Shown one piece after another: positions 794 through 18,327 of a DNA stretch of 64,000 nt. Location: positions 179,670-243,669 of IMG/VR virus record IMGVR_UViG_3300005289_000052; one strand, given 5' to 3'. Position 1 is the stretch's first letter, and the number at the start of each line of letters is the position of its first letter. Below the pieces are notes generated by a model that made no database searches, was not told the origin of the DNA, and worked only from the letters and a program-made list of their open reading frames with translations. Both the position numbers and the translations under genes were made by a program.

Positions 794-2236
794 TTAGCGG
801 CCATGGTGAATGAAGTTGGCAAGCGTTGCGATGATTGGTGCAGGAAGCGATACGTGTCCAGAGATTGCCCTGGGGTTACGTAGATCCAGTACACCATTAT
901 GCGGGGCCAACGGGTCCAACTTGAGAAGCGTCTTTTCGTCCAGGATCACAATGCCGTTCAAGGCGTCACCGTCAAAGTCGGCGTTCATCCCGGACAGGAT
1001 GTTCACAGATGGGCTGATGGTGTTGATCTTGGGGTCTTTCTTGATGCGACGGATGTACAGGCGCTGAGCCGAGAGACGGGTCAACGTCGGGTTACGCTGG
1101 AAGATTACCGCAATACCGCCACGGTGTCCTTCTGCGATCAGTTCCTCAAACAGCTCATCCAGCAGTGGGTGATACCGCAGGGTGTGCTCGTAAAGGAACT
1201 TGTTGATTTCGTTCGGGCTAAAGAGTTGGTCTGTTCCCGGAACGCAACGACGAAGTAGCTTGCTGGTCAGGTGAACCTTCAAGGTCATCACTGCCATCGG
1301 CCACGGTAGTTCGAGATCCTCGTAGTGGTGAGGGTCAGACAGGGACGAAATTACACCACGGAACGAGTAGTTAACTCGAGAGCCGAAGATGTGCTTACGA
1401 TACCAGCCTGGCTTACCACCCAGTTGCCCTGCGATGAAAGGCGCATAATAAGCCACCAACATGTTCAGAGCTTTGATCGTCATCACTTCAATCTGCCGAG
1501 GTTTCAGCGGAGTGGGTGAGTTTTCGATCGAACTGAATGTCCGCATGGCGTTAATCGCCGGAGTCATCCCTGTGTCAGCGTAGGTGCCAGTTGCCGTGTT
1601 CTCCGTAATAAAGGAGATCCGACTTGGACAGGGGATATACTTCGAGAAGATCGCATGACGGTACATCTGGACAAACATCAACGCGTCGTCCATTTGTTGC
1701 TGGTTCTTGTTGTTCGGAAGAATCTCCCGCAAGAACAAGTTCATCAGGTCATCGAAATGCCTGTAGAACGTATTGATACCCCGACCAATGTTCAGCCCTT
1801 TCAGGTACTGCAACACGTGTTGGGCATCGTTGTTGGGGGGAATGTACGATGGATTGGTTACCCAGTCCAGTAGGTTCGTTCCCTTGAAAGCGAAGATCGG
1901 CTTAAGCACATGGAGTGCCCAAGGGTTGATCAGTGCGTCAATGCCTCTTGGCGCAGCAATCCACAACAAGGACTCCAAAGGTCTTTCCGTAACCGACATA
2001 CAGGGAAACCCGCAGTGGTCACACACAACACCAACGTTGTGTTCGTACTTAACCCTCTTACATTCACATGACGGCACGACGTCTAAGGTGTCACCCTCAT
2101 AACGCGTCATGATCATTTGGTTCAGTCGTTCCCGATCCAGCTCGGTAGTAACATCGAAGTCGTTGATGATCACGGGAGCTGTTGTCAACTTGTTGAACAA
2201 CTCATCGTGACTAACGATTTCCGCTTCTACGCCCAT
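794..2236 (-). CDS. Non-virion RNA polymerase beta'-like subunit with catalytic motif (phiKZ gp55-56.1 type), uninterrupted
   Basis: Zn-binding CEC...CDHC, RKHIFGSR, QRNPTL and NADFDGD motifs; adjacent to chimallin. Confidence 0.93.
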   Translation of the reverse strand: MGVEAEIVSHDELFNKLTTAPVIINDFDVTTELDRERLNQMIMTRYEGDTLDVVPSCECKRVKYEHNVGVVCDHCGFPCMSVTERPLESLLWIAAPRGIDALINPWALHVLKPIFAFKGTNLLDWVTNPSYIPPNNDAQHVLQYLKGLNIGRGINTFYRHFDDLMNLFLREILPNNKNQQQMDDALMFVQMYRHAIFSKYIPCPSRISFITENTATGTYADTGMTPAINAMRTFSSIENSPTPLKPRQIEVMTIKALNMLVAYYAPFIAGQLGGKPGWYRKHIFGSRVNYSFRGVISSLSDPHHYEDLELPWPMAVMTLKVHLTSKLLRRCVPGTDQLFSPNEINKFLYEHTLRYHPLLDELFEELIAEGHRGGIAVIFQRNPTLTRLSAQRLYIRRIKKDPKINTISPSVNILSGMNADFDGDALNGIVILDEKTLLKLDPLAPHNGVLDLRNPRAISGHVSLPAPIIATLANFIHHGR

Positions 2237-2316: not shown

Positions 2317-4353
2317 TTAACGGTTCCAGGTCCCGGTGAAGGGGGAACCGAACATGCGGGAACCTTGTTGCTGACCGCCACCGTAGTTGAAGAAGCCACC
2401 AACGTTGTTGGCAACCAGGTGGTTGAGGTCGTAGCCGCCGCGCTGGGTCAGGACGTTGTTGTCGTCCAGGCCTTTCGCAGGACGCACGTTCAGACCGCAA
2501 CGTACGATTGCTTCGGACAGCGCTTCCAGGAAGGAGTTGTCGAAGCTTACGCGACGAGCAAAGCCTTTGACGTGGATTTCCGATGCCAGGAGCTGACGCA
2601 GGATTTCTTTGCGCTGAGCCAGGCGGATTTCCAGAGGAACCTGGATGTTGCGGTGAGTTTCTTCCCACGCCTCGACCAGTTTCGGGTTGGTCTTGCCAGC
2701 CAGGTTGAGGATGGCCAGGTAGTCGATCTCACGCAGGTCACGACGATTGCCTTCGCGATCGTAGTAGAAGCCCAGGTGGATACGGTCCTGATCGTCGTAG
2801 CACACTGGCTTGGACGCATCGAACAACTGCTGGAAGTGACCCATGGTCAGGTTGTTGGCTGCTTGCAGGATGGTCAGACGTGCGTTCTCGTCGCCGTTGG
2901 CGGCCGCGATGTAGGTCTGGTGAATCCAGGACAGCTCGCCAACCTCGGCGATGTCGAGGGTGAAGATCAGCTTTTGACCGATCAGCATGTTGATGAGCTG
3001 GCGCATTTCGTTGTCACCGAAGTCGGCGGAACGAGTTGGCAGTGCATCAGGCTTGGCTTGCGGATCGCCGGTCAGGTTGACTTCGTAACCGGTAGCACCC
3101 AGGTCTTTCAGGTCCACGTCGGTAGCCTTGCCCTTGTTGGCGCGCCAGGTACCGGTGAACAGGCCGTTGCGGTTCAGGCCGAAAGCAGTGGACAGGGCCA
3201 GGAGTTGCAGCTCCATGTTCACGGCGTCGGTCAGGGTGTCGACCGAGGTCAGCACCATACGCGGCTGGTACATCTGGGTAGCCATCATTTGCTGCTGGTT
3301 GCCGAACATGCCGAAGGCTTGCTGCTGAGGCTGGAAGCCTGCTTGAGCCGGTTGGTACATCAGGTCGACGTAGCCAGCGACGCGAGTCAGTTGGCGGGTC
3401 TGTTGCAGGCTGAACTGCGAGTCGGCTTGGGACTGCGCGGACATGGTGACGATGATGTCTTCACGTACCGGCATGCCCACGATGTCTTCGCCGTGCTGAC
3501 GAGTGAACTCGACGCGCGCGCTCAGTTGGTCGCCGGAGCCGACTTCACCCAGGGTGAACGGTTCTTCGTTGCCGCCGAGCTGGTTGTCCATGATGGTGTA
3601 GCAGGCCTGGGTGCTGTTGTGCAGCAGGCGGTTGAAGCGGTTCTCGGTGCTGACTTCAGCTTCGGCTGGAATCACAACGCCACCGGCATCGTGGATCTGA
3701 GCGTTGAAGCCGTAGCTGTTGATGACGAACTGCTCCAGAACTTGCCAGTACGACTTGTTCAGGTAGATGTCGCCAGGCACGATGTCGACTTCGACGGTGG
3801 TGCCGCCCAGGTTCACGCTGCTTGGGTCCAGTGGAGCGCCGCTCGATTCGACCAGCAGGCTGTAGACAGCGATGTGCTTCTGGCCCTGGTATTCTTCGTA
3901 GTAGCAGACCAGGATGCTGGAGAAAGTCACCTTGGACTGGTTGTTGTCCAGTACCAGGATGTTGAACTCTTTCTTCTGCTGTTCGGTCAGCACTTTGCCA
4001 GCGCGTTCTTTCAGACCCAGTTGAATGGTCTGAACGTCTTCACCGGACATGTTCCGTGGAACAGGGCGGCGGTGGTTGGCGTTGATGTCCAGGACCGAAC
4101 GGCCACGGCTACCTACGCGGGAGTTGTTGTTGGATTGCTGGTTCATCTGAGCACCTGCGTTGAAAGGCTGTTGCGGTTGAGCATTGCCGCCAGTTGGCTG
4201 CTGTTGCTGCCCACCGGTTGGTTGTTGAGTTTGTTCTTGGGGCTGTTCAGCACCCGTTGGAGTCATACCCGCTTTCAGCATGGCATCTGCCATTGCGCTG
4301 TTCTGCGGCTGGTTCCCCTGGCTCTGGCCAGGTCCATTACGTTTGACGGACAT
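2317..4353 (-). CDS. chmA: Chimallin / phage nuclear shell protein (phiKZ gp54 type)
   Basis: 678 aa, strongly biased high-expression codons, lies between DNA polymerase block and nvRNAP beta' as in phiKZ; RIHLGFY...RDLREIDYL segment; low-complexity N-terminus and G/F-rich C-tail; early promoter upstream. Confidence 0.88.
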   Translation of the reverse strand: MSVKRNGPGQSQGNQPQNSAMADAMLKAGMTPTGAEQPQEQTQQPTGGQQQQPTGGNAQPQQPFNAGAQMNQQSNNNSRVGSRGRSVLDINANHRRPVPRNMSGEDVQTIQLGLKERAGKVLTEQQKKEFNILVLDNNQSKVTFSSILVCYYEEYQGQKHIAVYSLLVESSGAPLDPSSVNLGGTTVEVDIVPGDIYLNKSYWQVLEQFVINSYGFNAQIHDAGGVVIPAEAEVSTENRFNRLLHNSTQACYTIMDNQLGGNEEPFTLGEVGSGDQLSARVEFTRQHGEDIVGMPVREDIIVTMSAQSQADSQFSLQQTRQLTRVAGYVDLMYQPAQAGFQPQQQAFGMFGNQQQMMATQMYQPRMVLTSVDTLTDAVNMELQLLALSTAFGLNRNGLFTGTWRANKGKATDVDLKDLGATGYEVNLTGDPQAKPDALPTRSADFGDNEMRQLINMLIGQKLIFTLDIAEVGELSWIHQTYIAAANGDENARLTILQAANNLTMGHFQQLFDASKPVCYDDQDRIHLGFYYDREGNRRDLREIDYLAILNLAGKTNPKLVEAWEETHRNIQVPLEIRLAQRKEILRQLLASEIHVKGFARRVSFDNSFLEALSEAIVRCGLNVRPAKGLDDNNVLTQRGGYDLNHLVANNVGGFFNYGGGQQQGSRMFGSPFTGTWNR

Positions 4354-6080: not shown

Positions 6081-6124
6081 GGAAACGGGGAAGCCTTGCG
6101 GCCTCCCCGTTTCCCTTTATGCCG
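6079..6124. terminator. Terminator between convergent genes, with TTTATGCCG tail
   Basis: AGGGAAACGGGGA...TCCCCGTTTCCCT inverted repeat then TTATGCCG. Confidence 0.75.
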
Positions 6125-8345
6125 CTGCGGATGCTGGGACAAAGTCCGAAACCAACTTGGTATTGTTGTCGTTAGACAAGAACACGCCGAGCGATTCCAA
6201 GATCAGATAGAACGGCCGGACTGTAGAGTAGACCAGTTTACGAATGTTCATTGCTGACAATACTTCTTTTGGCAGACCAGTCAACTCCACAACGTCCTTC
6301 GGCAGCAGCAACGTGGTAGCGTTGGTTTTGCCAGCGTAGGTATCGGTGAGGGTTTGTTTGATCTGAGGATCTTCGATCGTATCCAACCACAGGCCCAATG
6401 CCGTTTTGTTAGGCAAGTCCAGGGAGACTTTGATCGCAGAGTACGGAGGTTTTGGAGCTTCCCCGTATTTTGGACGGAACACACGCTCCCACAGGAGGTA
6501 GTGTTGATAAGGAGACTGACCTGGGTTGACGTATGCCGCCGGGTCTTTCACCTGAGTCCGTGCCAAGTAAGTAGATTCAGCGCGCATCACAGAACCAATA
6601 ATGCCGTGTTCGATATCAGCAACACGCTGCATGATTTCCGTGATCTTGATCTTCTTGCCGTCGATGATGCAGTCCATGATTTCACACATGGTCGACGTCA
6701 CTTGTTTCATGATCTGTGGCGGACAGTTAGAGTCTTTGAGGTAAACCCCTTTGATCTCTTCTTCCAGCTTCGAGAACACGTTCCCTTCTTTGGCTGCCTT
6801 GTAGGCGTAGTAATGCTTAGCCATCGAAGTCAGCGAGAACACCGAGAATGCAAACTCGTTCTTCATCGCCAATACGTTCAGCTTCTCTGGTACCACACCG
6901 AGTGTAGTGGACAGCATAGCCAAAACGTGGATGATCGACTGGGTGGCCAGGTAAACCATGGTGTAGTCCACGGCAAACGCGGTTTCACTAAAGTCAATCT
7001 TACCGGTGTACCACTCAACCCAGTTCTGCACGGTGAAGATCGTGGAGTCTGTGTCGGAGGTGATCGCTACGTGTCGGACAGAATCCCGAATCCATGCAAC
7101 CGAGGCTGGCATGTTGTCGGATACCCAGAACGCTTTGATCAGGTACTGGTATTCGTTCAGTACGTGGTGGATGTTCTTGATGGTTGCCCCGATCAAGCAG
7201 TAGCTCGTTGGGTTTACTTCCAGCAAGCGACCCAGACCCAAACCTTGTAGCTCCTTAGCGCACAGGAGGCTCACAAACGCTTTTAAGTCCGCATCCATAC
7301 CCTTGACATAGACCTTGGCTTCTTCCAGCTCCAGCGGCACTTCTACCTTCATGGAGAGGCGAGCCATGAACACCCGCATTGGTCCGTCGTTGAACTTCGC
7401 CAAGTGCCAGCAATCGCCGACATAAGCAAAGGCCGAACGTTGCAGATCGTTCATACCTTCAACCAGCTTACGGATTTCCGCAATCTGACTTTTGTTGGTC
7501 CAGTAGTGGTGAGTCGAGTAAAGGATCAGTTCCATTACTTCGTCTACGGTTGGAGCACGGAACCCGTAGAGGCTCATCGCTTTCTCAATCAGATCGTAGT
7601 CAACGTGACCGATGATGCTGACGATATTTGCCTTCACTACATCAGGACACCAATAATGTCGGTTGCCTGCCAAGAACTTCTCGTTGTTGGCGTTCCCCAA
7701 ACTGGTGGCTACACGGCAGGTCGAAGTCAGGCTCGAGTGAGCAGACTTGTTGTGCAGGATCGTGGAGGTCGACGCTTGTGCCCCGGACAGACTGTTGTTC
7801 GCAATCTTGTACGTGGTTTGTTCGTTCTCCTTAAGTTCTGCCAGTTCTTCCATCTGTACAGCATGGCGGCGGAACTTCTTGACTGCTTCAACATCCCCGG
7901 CTTTCTCAGCCTCATCTGCTTTCAGATTGGATTCTTGTTGCTCCATCTGTGCATTGTGACCTTCCTTCTTTACAGCACCCCGGCCCACAATGTTACCGGT
8001 GATGTATTCCGACAGTAGAGAAGGAATAACGTCCGGGTGTTCGTACACAGTCATGGACGGTGCAAACAACCAGTTGTTATCTTTGATGTCCTTGAGGTAG
8101 GTCGAGTAAGTCATCTCCGTACGCTCACGGTCACCGACTTTGTTCCGGTGCAGGCAGTACAGAGCTGGGTCTTTGATCTCGAATTTACCACCCGGACCTG
8201 TCACACGGTGAATGTACCCTTGACAGTCTTCCAACGGCTTCCCCGTACGCACATGCAAAAAGATTGCCATGTCACGACGGTAGTTAGCCAGAATATCTAG
8301 GTCGCGCTTATAAGCGGACGCTGGCTTGATGAAATGGTTTTCCAT
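6117..8345 (-). CDS. Family B DNA polymerase, polymerase subunit (phiKZ gp50 type)
   Basis: KIANNSLSG (motif B), SDTDSTIF (motif C), KHYYA; probable start MENHF at 8345. Confidence 0.9.
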   Translation of the reverse strand: MENHFIKPASAYKRDLDILANYRRDMAIFLHVRTGKPLEDCQGYIHRVTGPGGKFEIKDPALYCLHRNKVGDRERTEMTYSTYLKDIKDNNWLFAPSMTVYEHPDVIPSLLSEYITGNIVGRGAVKKEGHNAQMEQQESNLKADEAEKAGDVEAVKKFRRHAVQMEELAELKENEQTTYKIANNSLSGAQASTSTILHNKSAHSSLTSTCRVATSLGNANNEKFLAGNRHYWCPDVVKANIVSIIGHVDYDLIEKAMSLYGFRAPTVDEVMELILYSTHHYWTNKSQIAEIRKLVEGMNDLQRSAFAYVGDCWHLAKFNDGPMRVFMARLSMKVEVPLELEEAKVYVKGMDADLKAFVSLLCAKELQGLGLGRLLEVNPTSYCLIGATIKNIHHVLNEYQYLIKAFWVSDNMPASVAWIRDSVRHVAITSDTDSTIFTVQNWVEWYTGKIDFSETAFAVDYTMVYLATQSIIHVLAMLSTTLGVVPEKLNVLAMKNEFAFSVFSLTSMAKHYYAYKAAKEGNVFSKLEEEIKGVYLKDSNCPPQIMKQVTSTMCEIMDCIIDGKKIKITEIMQRVADIEHGIIGSVMRAESTYLARTQVKDPAAYVNPGQSPYQHYLLWERVFRPKYGEAPKPPYSAIKVSLDLPNKTALGLWLDTIEDPQIKQTLTDTYAGKTNATTLLLPKDVVELTGLPKEVLSAMNIRKLVYSTVRPFYLILESLGVFLSNDNNTKLVSDFVPASAAA

Positions 8346-8403
8346 TAGTGCTCCCGAAAGCGGTAGTCCCACATTCTATTACCCTCTGACAGATTTTAAT
8401 ACT

Positions 8404-10292: not shown

Positions 10293-10712
10293 TCATCGAA
10301 ATGGTTCAATCAAGATGTTACTTCCGATCCATCTGCGGATCTCGTGATATCCATAGTTAGGTAACGGGGTGTATTGCAAAACCATTTCCCAAACTCGGTC
10401 GTGAATCTCACTAGCGAGTACGGTCAGGTGATGGATAGCAATAGCCTCCCCGTCAGAAAGCTCCGGCATACCAGCAGGCCGGTTAGCAATTAGATAGTCA
10501 GACATGATAGAGAGTGTAGACCATGTCGAATGTGGACGTAAGTCAAAAGACTGATTCAGATTCGACACAGTGAACGACAGCTCAATCAGATCCTTTATTT
10601 CAAGCGTGTGTTCTGCCAAGTACGGACCAAGATGGCTGTACTCGCGCATGATTCGTTCGACGGGAACGAGGATCTGTTGGTTTTGCACGATTACCAATCC
10701 TTCCATTTCCAC
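10293..10712 (-). CDS. Hypothetical protein, tandem run
   Basis: ORF track, AGGAG RBS. Confidence 0.7.
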   Translation of the reverse strand: MEMEGLVIVQNQQILVPVERIMREYSHLGPYLAEHTLEIKDLIELSFTVSNLNQSFDLRPHSTWSTLSIMSDYLIANRPAGMPELSDGEAIAIHHLTVLASEIHDRVWEMVLQYTPLPNYGYHEIRRWIGSNILIEPFR

Positions 10713-10732
10713 TCTCCTGAGAGTGTGTCAGG

Positions 10733-11164
10733 TTACCAGATTTCGATAAGATACCCACGGTCTGTGTGGTTGAGGTCGAAACTCCAATCACGGTGGCGCA
10801 TCAGTTTGGCTAGGTAGGGACGACAGATGCGTCTACCCAAGCCGTACACGTATTCGTAATGCTGTAGCAGGTCTCGCTCGGTGTGGAAGGCGTAGTAATC
10901 ATCCTTACACATCTGGTTTACCAAGATCTCATCCATCGCCATAACGAGACTTTCATGGTAAGCCAAAGGGTCATGAGTCAATTCGCCGTGTATCATGGTT
11001 AGCGTAAAGTCTACATGACCCATACCGATTATTCTCAGGGCCCGATCTTCTAACCTAGGAAAGATACTATCAGGCAAGTAAATGCTGAATATACCCTTAC
11101 AGGTCGGTAAGGTCACCTGTGATACCAAGCTGTCGGCGAAGTTCTGAAGGGTACCAATCGCCAT
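10733..11164 (-). CDS. Hypothetical protein, tandem run
   Basis: ORF track, GGAG RBS. Confidence 0.65.
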   Translation of the reverse strand: MAIGTLQNFADSLVSQVTLPTCKGIFSIYLPDSIFPRLEDRALRIIGMGHVDFTLTMIHGELTHDPLAYHESLVMAMDEILVNQMCKDDYYAFHTERDLLQHYEYVYGLGRRICRPYLAKLMRHRDWSFDLNHTDRGYLIEIW

Positions 11165-14962: not shown

Positions 14963-15193
14963 TTAACACAGGATCGCGATACCCTCATCACAGTGACAAG
15001 GACAAGTACAAACCTCTTCGTCCTTACCATCGGGCTTTACAAGCACCCAATTGCGATGTGGTCGCGGTGTAGCGATGTCACGTTCTTCAATGCGAACGAT
15101 CTCACCAAACAGCTTTCGAAGGCGTTCAATATCGGGCGGACTATCGTAACTGGTCCTGAAAGTTGCTTGGGGGTATTTGCAACATCCAAACAT
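14963..15193 (-). CDS. Small Cys-rich protein (76 aa)
   Basis: Likely ATG at 15193 (MFGCCKY...CTCPCHC...C); follows the 60-aa gene. Confidence 0.55.
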   Translation of the reverse strand: MFGCCKYPQATFRTSYDSPPDIERLRKLFGEIVRIEERDIATPRPHRNWVLVKPDGKDEEVCTCPCHCDEGIAILC

Positions 15194-15785: not shown

Positions 15786-16418
15786 TTAATCCGAGCGACG
15801 GTTGCGTTGGCCGTATTCGATACGAAGAACGGCGAACAGTTCGACACCGGCAGTCGGTGCGGCGTGAGCACAGGCTTCCCACATCTGGGTATCTACCTGA
15901 ATCGACAGAGCACGACCATTCGGCATCCGGTCGTTGAACGACTTCATGCGAGTCTCGCTCTTGTGTGCTACTGCTTCAACGACGTTGCTCTGGACGACCA
16001 GGGCATCAACCGTTTCAATGCGCACCACTTGGACTGAGAAGATCGCATCCAGCTTTTCCAACTTGGCGCCAGCGGCTTCACCCAACTCGTACAAGTTGGA
16101 GCGCACATCACCATCAAGCGGAATACGGACCTCGAACTTGTTGACGTAATCCTCAGCATCAAGGACTACCCAGTCGTCAGCCAGGATGTCAGACTGAGAG
16201 GCAACCCACGGCACAAAATCACCGTTGTGTGCTTTCAAGCCCAACCAAGGTCGCAGGTTCGGTGTAGGGTCCTTACGAACGTTGAGCCCAACGGTTCGGG
16301 CACCCACGTCATAGTGACTAGCGCCAACTAAGACGACCCACATGCCTTTACCGTTCCAACCCTCGCGTGTGGCGCGAGAGCCGTGCTTCAATCCCGTAAG
16401 GGCTTGACCGAACTCCAT
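15786..16418 (-). CDS. DUF2829 (Tad2-like anti-defence sponge) domain fused to an unknown C-terminal domain
   Basis: MEFGQAL..LK.G....R.GWNGKGMWV ... FVPWVASQSDILADDW signature; AGGAG RBS. Confidence 0.85.
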   Translation of the reverse strand: MEFGQALTGLKHGSRATREGWNGKGMWVVLVGASHYDVGARTVGLNVRKDPTPNLRPWLGLKAHNGDFVPWVASQSDILADDWVVLDAEDYVNKFEVRIPLDGDVRSNLYELGEAAGAKLEKLDAIFSVQVVRIETVDALVVQSNVVEAVAHKSETRMKSFNDRMPNGRALSIQVDTQMWEACAHAAPTAGVELFAVLRIEYGQRNRRSD

Positions 16419-16629: not shown

Positions 16630-16704
16630 TGGCTCCGAGACCTGGATTCGAACCAGGGACCAAACGGTTAACAGCCGTCTACTCTACCGCTGAGCTATCC
16701 CGGA
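16630..16704 (-). tRNA. tRNA-Asn(GUU)
   Basis: GACGG-CTGTTAA-CCGTT, GCCA end. Confidence 0.95.
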
Positions 16705-16811
16705 AAGGAAATTGAATGGGAAATGTGCCTCCGTCCCAAAGCGGAGGCGTAGGATATGGAGTGAACCATAACTGACGCCCGCAGCCACCCCGAAGGGCAA
16801 TCCACCACAAA

Positions 16812-16898
16812 TCAACGTAGGTTGCTTTATACCTGACTAAGCGACCAGACCATGGAGGAACTGACTAGGGGTATGATCCCTAGTTCTCCCTACGTTGA
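16812..16898 (-). ncRNA. Circularly permuted tRNA-like (YrlA-like topology) RNA candidate
   Basis: 10-bp terminal stem; T-like arm precedes an acceptor-like hairpin (with internal CCA) and a D-like arm. Confidence 0.5.
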
Positions 16899-16901
16899 AT
16901 A

Positions 16902-16977
16902 TGGCGCCTCCGAAGGGACTTGAACCCTCGGCCCCCGGCGTGACAGGCCGGTGCTCTAACCACTGAGCTACGGAAGC
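16902..16977 (-). tRNA. tRNA-Asp(GUC)
   Basis: CCGGC-CTGTCAC-GCCGG, GCCA end. Confidence 0.95.
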
Positions 16978-18196: not shown

Positions 18197-18327
18197 TGGC
18201 CCCGCTACCTGGATTCGAACCAGGGACCTCCCGACGGGCACGCGTGTTCAAACGTTCTCACCGCAGCGCGGCTATTAACGTAACCGCATGTCAGACGAGT
18301 GCTCTATACCAACTGAGCTATAGCCGG
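18197..18327 (-). ncRNA. tRNA-like RNA (GAC/Val-like) with a 53-nt insertion in the anticodon loop
   Basis: Canonical TAGCTCAGTTGGTATAGAGC D arm, CCTGG-TTCGAAT-CCAGG T arm, GCCA end; insert at 18236-18288. Confidence 0.75.

Follow-up and report, generated by a model that had tools for sequence, protein, structure and literature searches.

A conserved RNA with circularly permuted tRNA-like architecture in the tRNA cluster of a jumbo phage

Background

Permuted tRNA genes of the Cyanidioschyzon merolae type yield full decoding tRNAs via a circular intermediate and a bulge-helix-bulge motif. A permuted tRNA-like order is also found in YrlA, which is bound by Rsr and whose T and D loops are modified by TruB and DusA; A58 matters for TruB. 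Until now, to our knowledge, permuted tRNA mimicry of the T-acceptor-D kind has been associated with Ro60/Rsr ribonucleoproteins, and the phage and bacterial Y RNAs known to us adjoin a Ro60 gene, within a few kb and on the same strand. In other systems, tRNA-like t-elements and mascRNA-type structures have a processing role. Phage tRNA genes can also be accompanied by stable structured non-tRNA RNAs, such as the co-matured species 1 and 2 RNAs of T4 (rnaD/rnaC), whose function is unassigned.

YrlA's T and D stem-loops are invariant and its acceptor-like stem is variable (PMC4201824). RNase P cuts the Mycobacterium smegmatis YrlA, whose acceptor-like stem is 7 bp long, in vitro, and in vivo this YrlA is cleaved and CCA-tailed (PMC4201824). 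Y RNA-like genes are known in phages (PMC4201824, PMC12135203, PMC7824862), and Chimalliviridae-type jumbo phages carry few RNA-repair genes (review PMC7824862). Here, we analyzed an element in a phage tRNA cluster for which an original prediction, made from the letters of the DNA, had proposed a circularly permuted tRNA-like RNA of the YrlA or permuted-tRNA type.

Results and discussion

The phage and its tRNA cluster

The DNA analyzed (the window) is the terminal 64 kb of a 243,669-bp IMG/VR phage genome, which has direct terminal repeats and is rated 100% complete. Three genes in the window mark the phage as a nucleus-forming, PhiKZ-like jumbo phage:

797-2236, minus strand: RNA polymerase beta'-like fragment (split RNA polymerase subunit)
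2320-4353, minus strand: homologue of chimallin, the phage-nucleus shell protein
6120-8372, minus strand: divergent family-B DNA polymerase (PolB)

The closest cultured phages (Xanthomonas, Burkholderia and Ralstonia) share a PolB identity of only about 40-44% with it. Judged by its genes, the window phage is a nucleus-forming jumbo phage that is far from all cultured ones.

When the window was scanned with ARAGORN, 13 tRNA genes were found at 13.2-17.9 kb, every one on the minus strand. Two of them flank the element:

16902-16977, minus strand: tRNA-Asp(GUC), upstream neighbour (ARAGORN/Rfam)
16630-16704, minus strand: tRNA-Asn(GUU), downstream neighbour (ARAGORN)

The recurrent core of such phage tRNA clusters (G005, which is the L003 region, G000 and L101) consists of Tyr(GUA), Gln, Asp(GUC) and Asn(GUU). 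G005 has only these four, and the window cluster adds His(GUG). The core tRNAs are mostly of the GUN-anticodon type, which we take to be queuosine recipients and targets of some anticodon nucleases. One further tRNA gene (18197-18327, minus strand; Rfam match of 44.9 bits) was missed by ARAGORN and holds a 55-nt insertion in the anticodon-loop region, which is too short for a group I intron. The cluster of a close relative includes an ARAGORN tRNA with a four-base anticodon (gaaa; L083:6984-7064 and L084:4274-4354, plus strand), and the tRNA-Ala(UGC) of the window is located at about the same place.

The spacer 3' of the element (16705-16811, minus strand) and that of a metagenome homologue (L017:3530-3668, minus strand) both start with UGUGGUGG and have a GC-rich hairpin with ACAUUUC after it. 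Two other homologues (L002 and L015) have a downstream module in common, which differs from the one in the window and L017. No site resembling a terminator was scored on the minus strand.

Fold and parts of the element

All the pieces listed in the original prediction were found in place on the minus strand, including the start of the element 3 nt past the CCA of tRNA-Asp: the spacer UAU separates the CCA end (16902) from the first nucleotide of the element (16898). The parts are as follows, in 5' to 3' order on the minus strand:

16812-16898, minus strand: whole element, an 87-nt four-helix permuted tRNA-like RNA (fold, covariance-model matches, RNAalifold)
16889-16898, minus strand: 5' strand of the closing stem H1, UCAACGUAGG, where a tRNA would have the 3' strand of its anticodon stem
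16884-16888, minus strand: linker J1/2, GAGAA, at the variable-loop position; invariant in all homologues (alignments A5 and A6)
16865-16883, minus strand: H2, T-like arm CUAGGG-AUCAUAC-CCCUAG (sequence, conservation, energy)
16845-16864, minus strand: H3, capped acceptor-like hairpin with the loop UCCAU in the window copy (covariation)
16843-16844, minus strand: linker J3/4, UC, at the U8-N9 position; U is invariant and the second base is C or A
16824-16842, minus strand: H4, D-like arm GCUU-AGUCAGGUAUA-AAGC, with A14, G15, G18G19 and A21 present
16822-16823, minus strand: linker J4/1, AA, at the N26 position; AA, AC, GC or GU among homologues
16812-16821, minus strand: 3' strand of H1, CCUACGUUGA, which pairs with the 5' strand

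When the sequence was folded with RNAfold, the minimum-free-energy structure was a four-way junction of H1-H4 at -30 kcal/mol (z = -3.1), and 1 of 200 shuffles was as good. This fold consists of H1 (10 bp), GAGAA, H2 (6-7 bp with the loop AUCAUAC), a weaker H3, UC, H4 and AA. The closing stem, predicted to be perfect over 10 bp, is indeed a perfect inverted repeat (TCAACGTAGG/CCTACGTTGA, at 16889-16898 and 16812-16821), and the D-like arm reads GCTT-AGTCAGGTATA-AAGC at the DNA level (4 bp and an 11-nt loop). H3 directly abuts H2 with a linker of 0 nt and is imperfect in the window copy, with a U.U mismatch and a bulge. The predicted CCA-ending acceptor thus held in part: CCA is present in the H3 loop of the window copy, but the hairpin is imperfect and the CCA is limited to the lineage of the window.

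By our own arithmetic, about six 10-bp stems are expected by chance in 64 kb, so the stem alone is not beyond chance. It is conservation that shows the element to be real: other phage contigs carry it as eight distinct variants, and these show covariation.

Homologues

The eight distinct homologues are all from uncultured jumbo-phage or metagenome contigs, and all lie within tRNA clusters on the tRNA strand. Exact-pattern scans, in which both loop sequences were fixed for most homologues, found the element in two contigs of IMG/VR (L002 and L003) and at six loci in metagenomes (L015, L020 and L022, which are the same; L017; L025; and L028, nearly identical to the window copy). No real match to the patterns was found in 185,579 prokaryote genomes, and the 197-nt Asp-Asn spacer including the element had no match in 50,697 phage records. 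Since the loops were fixed in the patterns, their apparent conservation is inflated, and a second search therefore went by context, first with the tRNA-Asp body and afterwards with H1 and GAGAA alone. Two divergent copies were added in this way. The first (L096) has the H2 loop UUCAGAU, which is a near-canonical T loop, a 10-nt D loop and a long H3. The second (L101) has degenerate H2 and H4, with the T-like and D-like arms lost, and keeps H1, GAGAA and H3. Covariance-model matches to the element were also obtained in homologues. Public sequencing runs yielded only contigs, which mostly matched the tRNAs, and in them neither usable RNA reads nor RNA ends were found.

At 8 of the 11 loci examined, exactly 3 nt separate the start of the element from the CCA of the tRNA upstream. 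This tRNA is tRNA-Asp at the homologous loci, except for tRNA-Asn in L017. The order Asp-element-Asn is found at most of them; in L017 the element is downstream of Asn. Three copies (L002, L096 and L101) have a 138-nt structured insert between tRNA-Asp and the element. The insert (L002:1545-1682, minus strand, also in L096 and L101) is conserved and has terminal inverted repeats of about 17-20 nt, a strong fold (z = -2.8) and no Rfam match. It could represent a further non-coding RNA, or else a small mobile insertion.

The H3 loop holds CCA only in the window, L017 and a variant from a wastewater contig; in the latter, the change U50A turns the U.U mismatch of the window H3 into a U-A pair. 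Elsewhere the loop is CUCAACA or ACUCAUGA, or the hairpin is much longer, and CCA is missing in L002, L015, L003, L025, L096 and L101. The length of H3 is not conserved either, with L025 and L096 having much longer hairpins.

Covariation and sequence constraint

In the alignment of the eight sequences, 93% of the cells pair and seven pairs are changed on both sides. The covariation score was above those of all 500 shuffles and all slid controls. The signal is contributed by five of the six pairs in H3 and by the top H1 pair (G-C, A-U or G.U); six of the ten H1 pairs never vary among the homologues. H2 and H4 show hardly any variation and no covariation, and this near-invariance makes covariation uninformative on both helices. 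Pairing in H2 and H4 is probable, with conservation and folding energy arguing for the H2 helix. When an independent MAFFT alignment was submitted to RNAalifold, the same four helices were obtained as a cloverleaf. G.U pairs (in L017, L003, L015 and the window) exist on the minus strand only, and those on the H1 3' strand (L017, L003 and L015) argue for an RNA on the minus strand.

Pairwise identity is 93-99% in the element outside H3, 75-95% in the adjacent tRNA-Asp and 6-89% in H3. The phage G005 and the window phage have a median protein identity of 35%, yet their element cores differ at 2 of 67 positions. As H3 has diverged and been compensated, recent transfer cannot explain the invariant core, whereas sequence-specific constraint can. 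The best-conserved part is the closing stem with GAGAA, which persists even in the degenerate L101. Because that copy is without T-like and D-like arms, the function may not centre on the tRNA-like elbow.

Likeness to tRNA and permuted topology

The linkers between the helices are 5, 0, 2 and 2 nt long. The corresponding tRNA linkers are the variable loop (4-5 nt), 0 nt, U8-N9 (2 nt) and N26 (1 nt). These lengths suggest that H2 is stacked on H3 and H4 on H1. When read cyclically, the parts come in the order of a tRNA, from the variable loop through the T arm, acceptor, U8-N9, D arm and N26 to the anticodon stem. The D arm residues U8, G10, Y11, A14, R15, G18G19, A21, R24 and C25 were recognized. 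H2 is identical in six of the eight distinct variants and retains the T-loop features U55, C56, R57, Y60 and G53-C61, with positions 54 and 58 swapped to A and U. The A54/U58 loop noted in the original prediction (AUCAUAC) was thus seen in the window. It does not fit the pair that is canonical for T loops, and the elbow may therefore have a different construction. The contact between the D and T loops is putative. Another contact is possible, with four Watson-Crick pairs between AUAC of the H2 loop (L2) and GUAU of the H4 loop (L4); with a chance of about 1 in 8 by our own estimate, it is not statistically compelling.

For an in-silico de-permutation, each variant was cut in the H3 loop and five H1 pairs were closed by an arbitrary 7-nt loop. 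At the default threshold, ARAGORN called 22 of the 24 de-permuted constructs as tRNA. Among the controls, tRNAs were called in 4/300 when all loops and linkers were shuffled and in 2/300 with random loops (about 1%), as well as in 6/300 when the D loop alone and 51/300 when the T loop alone was shuffled. The native-order element gave no tRNA call from ARAGORN (0/6, even with a relaxed threshold) or from Rfam. The near-canonical T loop UUCAGAU of L096 supports the homology of H2 to a T arm.

The circularly permuted tRNA-like topology that had been predicted is therefore supported by arm order, linkers, residues, the ARAGORN calls and the L096 T loop. It is well supported that the element is a conserved, structured, tRNA-shaped RNA gene on the tRNA strand, with a permuted architecture. 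A decoding tRNA is ruled out, as there is no anticodon loop. The second label that had been offered, a true permuted tRNA gene, likewise failed, because neither the 10-bp stem nor the flanks, which are not conserved, can supply an anticodon loop and because CCA is not conserved.

We also considered H2 as an initiator-like anticodon arm (GGG/CCC and UCAUA), and rejected this because the cyclic order of the helices and the linker lengths fit a T arm alone. When a parent tRNA was sought among the phage tRNAs, none stood out as the ancestor.

YrlA and Ro60

Membership of YrlA or the Y RNAs was not borne out. The YrlA covariance model (RF02553, gathering score 69 bits) gave no match on the element at E <= 10; its only matches in the genome were of 10-11 bits and elsewhere in the tRNA cluster. 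The GNCGAAN0-1G (CGAA) motif is absent near the 5' end, where the window copy reads UCAACGUAGGGAGAAC, and no homologue holds CGAA. A Ro60/TROVE search of the complete phage genome and five other phage contigs (G002, G005, G006, G007 and G008, four of them with the element) found no genuine gene. The earlier statement that the window has no Ro60/Rsr gene was correct, and the lone TROVE match in it is spurious.

This Pfam match (25 bits, 10506-10892, plus strand, about 6 kb from the element) is above the Pfam cut-off and contains three in-frame stops. It was rejected as Ro60: it is antisense to four consecutive minus-strand ORFs with a third-codon-position substitution bias relative to G002, hmmscan on the open piece does not reproduce it, it shows no similarity to PDB Ro60 structures, and relatives have no such match. 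It could mislead a search for a Ro60 partner.

The arm order of the YrlA type (T, acceptor-like, D, with the RNA ending in the closing stem) was found in the element. So was the conservation of the YrlA type, with near-invariant T and D stem-loops and an acceptor-like stem that is variable yet paired; here the search patterns had fixed the loops for most homologues. The T-like loop of the element is without U54 and A58.

Distribution and neighbouring genes

Close relatives of the phage are often without the element, and its slot is variable. In G002 (PolB identity 96%), the Asp-Asn spacer holds an ORF resembling an HNH homing endonuclease (L011:5553-6075, minus strand), and in another relative the slot is filled by 73 unrelated nt. 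No element follows tRNA-Asp in L097, L091 and L072-74, and the whole Tyr-Gln-Asp-Asn block is missing in L083/84. A MITE-like mobile element was considered and rejected, as there is one copy per genome and no target-site duplication.

Two protein genes are found near the element:

15786-16418, minus strand: protein of 210 aa with a Tad2-like domain (Thoeris anti-defence 2, PF11195) at its N-terminus, encoded between tRNA genes
14966-15193, minus strand: gpX, a 76-aa Cys-rich orphan protein (alignment A4, P0001-P0007)

The Tad2-like protein is encoded about 0.4 kb downstream of the element, and a 280-aa version is found at the same position in L072-74. In gpX, an invariant MFGCC marks the N-terminus, CTCxCH lies close to the C-terminus and Cys is the terminal residue; the protein may therefore bind metal. 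No Pfam or PHROG match was found for it, and its occurrence is limited to the tRNA regions of these phages and a few metagenome contigs. In four phage lineages, it follows the element at a distance of 0.16-1.7 kb on the downstream side, and it co-occurs with the element in all the IMG/VR carriers initially found; it is missing in G002. However, we concluded that gpX is not an obligate partner, because in the wider search each occurs without the other: gpX without the element in L072-74, L075-82 and L083/84, and the element without gpX nearby in L028 and L022.

When antisense targets were sought, the phage genomes held no complement to the invariant loops outside the element's own locus. RtcB, a CCA-adding enzyme and an Rnl2-type ligase are all absent from the phage genome.

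Proposed role and alternatives

The reading that we prefer, at a probability of roughly 0.4, is that the element is a tRNA-derived permuted tRNA mimic, an accessory RNA that acts in trans and is matured from the tRNA operon in a small clade of chimallin-encoding jumbo phages. The element would be co-transcribed with the tRNAs and freed by the nucleases that mature its neighbours. Its 5' end would be set by the cut after the CCA of the upstream tRNA, and its 3' end would arise when RNase P cleaves the next tRNA and the RNA is then trimmed from the 3' side back to the 10-bp stem. The released RNA would be L-shaped, with H2 on H3, H4 on H1 and an elbow of the D and T loops, and would be neither charged nor decoding. 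Its role in trans would be that of a stable decoy or an adaptor, aimed at a protein that reads the tRNA body or elbow together with the closing stem and GAGAA.

Close relatives can do without the element and its region is variable and accessory, which makes a host factor the most likely target. Proteins of tRNA-directed defence or RNA quality control are one plausible class; an essential phage function is less likely. A more specific form of the proposal is a Ro60-independent "orphan" tRNA mimic, whose anticodon-less, capped and unchargeable body would neutralize or redirect a host protein that recognizes tRNA shape (for example, a tRNA-cleaving or tRNA-modifying defence effector, or a damaged-tRNA sensor), as a new class of RNA-based counter-defence. 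We hold this version to be unlikely but worth stating. In a bolder variant still, RNase P would open the capped loop and produce a two-piece, CCA-ended bait for tRNA 3'-end enzymes.

A role in cis is unlikely. The element would then be a processing or stability element, a tRNA-shaped "punctuation" that guides or blocks RNase E, RNase P or 3' exonucleases and so helps to mature or protect the neighbouring tRNA-Asp and tRNA-Asn. The exact 3-nt spacing after CCA at 8 of 11 loci (with Asn, not Asp, upstream in L017), the constant location in tRNA clusters on the tRNA strand, and the top conservation of the closing stem and GAGAA, which are retained in the degenerate L101, are all consistent with such a role. 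However, the other tRNAs of the cluster and the tRNA-Asp of close relatives manage without the element, the 138-nt insert parts it from tRNA-Asp in L002, L096 and L101, and the near-invariant loops and helix sequences exceed the needs of a simple processing hairpin. The constant spacer itself is explicable by descent alone.

Cleavage by RNase P in the H3 loop, 5' of the acceptor-like strand, would give a two-piece tRNA-like molecule with a 3' NCCA end, either encoded or repaired. Such an anticodon-less tRNA body could be aminoacylated, or be attacked by 3'-end enzymes instead of real tRNAs. The H3 loop of the window reads as a discriminator U, CCA and one U before G+1, and CCA is also found in L017 and the wastewater variant; H2 and H3 form about 12 stacked pairs, like the acceptor/T stack of tRNA, and the cleavage of the M. 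smegmatis YrlA by RNase P is a precedent (PMC4201824). We consider this improbable, however, as the loop has no CCA in six copies (L002, L015, L003, L025, L096 and L101), H3 is not conserved in length and has a mismatch and a bulge in the window, and the phage is without a CCA-adding enzyme.

A true YrlA-type Y RNA that uses a Ro60/Rsr encoded by the host, and thereby the host PNPase, is very improbable. The arm order and conservation pattern resemble those of YrlA (PMC4201824) and Y RNA-like genes do occur in phages (PMC4201824, PMC12135203, PMC7824862), but Ro60 was found neither in the phage nor in the five other contigs, CGAA is absent, RF02553 is silent at E <= 10, and the element has no extra Ro-binding module beyond the plain 10-bp stem.

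Also very improbable is a non-functional relic, left by tandem tRNA duplication and deletion or carried along by recombination or homing in the tRNA cluster: the patchy distribution among close relatives, the degenerate L101 copy, the homing-endonuclease ORF in the same slot of G002 and the capped N-CCA loop (as expected from a 3'-half/5'-half fusion of CCA-encoding tRNA genes) would suit it, but the core is 93-99% identical between phages with proteins about 35-74% identical, and H3 is heavily diverged yet paired through compensatory changes, where recent transfer would have kept it identical.

The presence of the same constrained layout within a tRNA operon of Ro60-less phages would show a Ro60-independent use of the module. 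It would also add a non-coding RNA family to the Chimalliviridae-type jumbo phages, and the element may point to a host tRNA-recognizing factor that is important during infection. The small size of the element, the clear structure-guided mutants that it offers and its natural presence or absence among relatives make its role (decoy, adaptor or processing signal) directly testable.

Comparison with known systems

At gathering scores and at E <= 10, no Rfam family was found on the element, either in the window or in L002. Among the described systems, the tRNA-like module of YrlA (RF02553; Chen et al. 2014, PMC4201824) has the same order of T arm, capped acceptor-like stem and D arm, ends like the element in a stem at the position of the anticodon stem, and does no decoding. 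Unlike YrlA, the element has no Ro60/Rsr nearby or anywhere in the phage, and no GNCGAA/CGAA Ro-binding motif or Ro-binding module beyond its plain 10-bp stem. Its T loop is AUCAUAC (A54/U58) in place of the TpsiC consensus, and it is located inside a tRNA operon 3 nt after a tRNA, whereas YrlA is upstream of rsr.

In permuted tRNA genes, as in the element, the T arm and acceptor 3' strand (with CCA in the window copy) precede the acceptor 5' strand and D arm. The element differs from the C. merolae-type genes in having no anticodon loop and no bulge-helix-bulge, and its flanks and CCA are not conserved. The tRNA-like domain of two-piece tmRNA similarly has the T arm and acceptor 3' strand ahead of the acceptor 5' strand and a D-like region, and a helix that replaces the anticodon stem. 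In contrast to permuted tmRNA, the element has no tag reading frame and no pseudoknots, and its acceptor is capped and, in most lineages, without CCA. A tmRNA was rejected directly, since the ARAGORN tmRNA search and the Rfam tmRNA_permuted model gave no match at the element and 87 nt is too small for a tag frame.

The T4 RNAs (species 1 and 2) resemble the element as small structured RNAs among phage tRNA genes, with no similarity in sequence or model. From these comparisons, we concluded that the element is a real, previously undescribed RNA family, for which the predicted permuted topology is right and the YrlA label is wrong.
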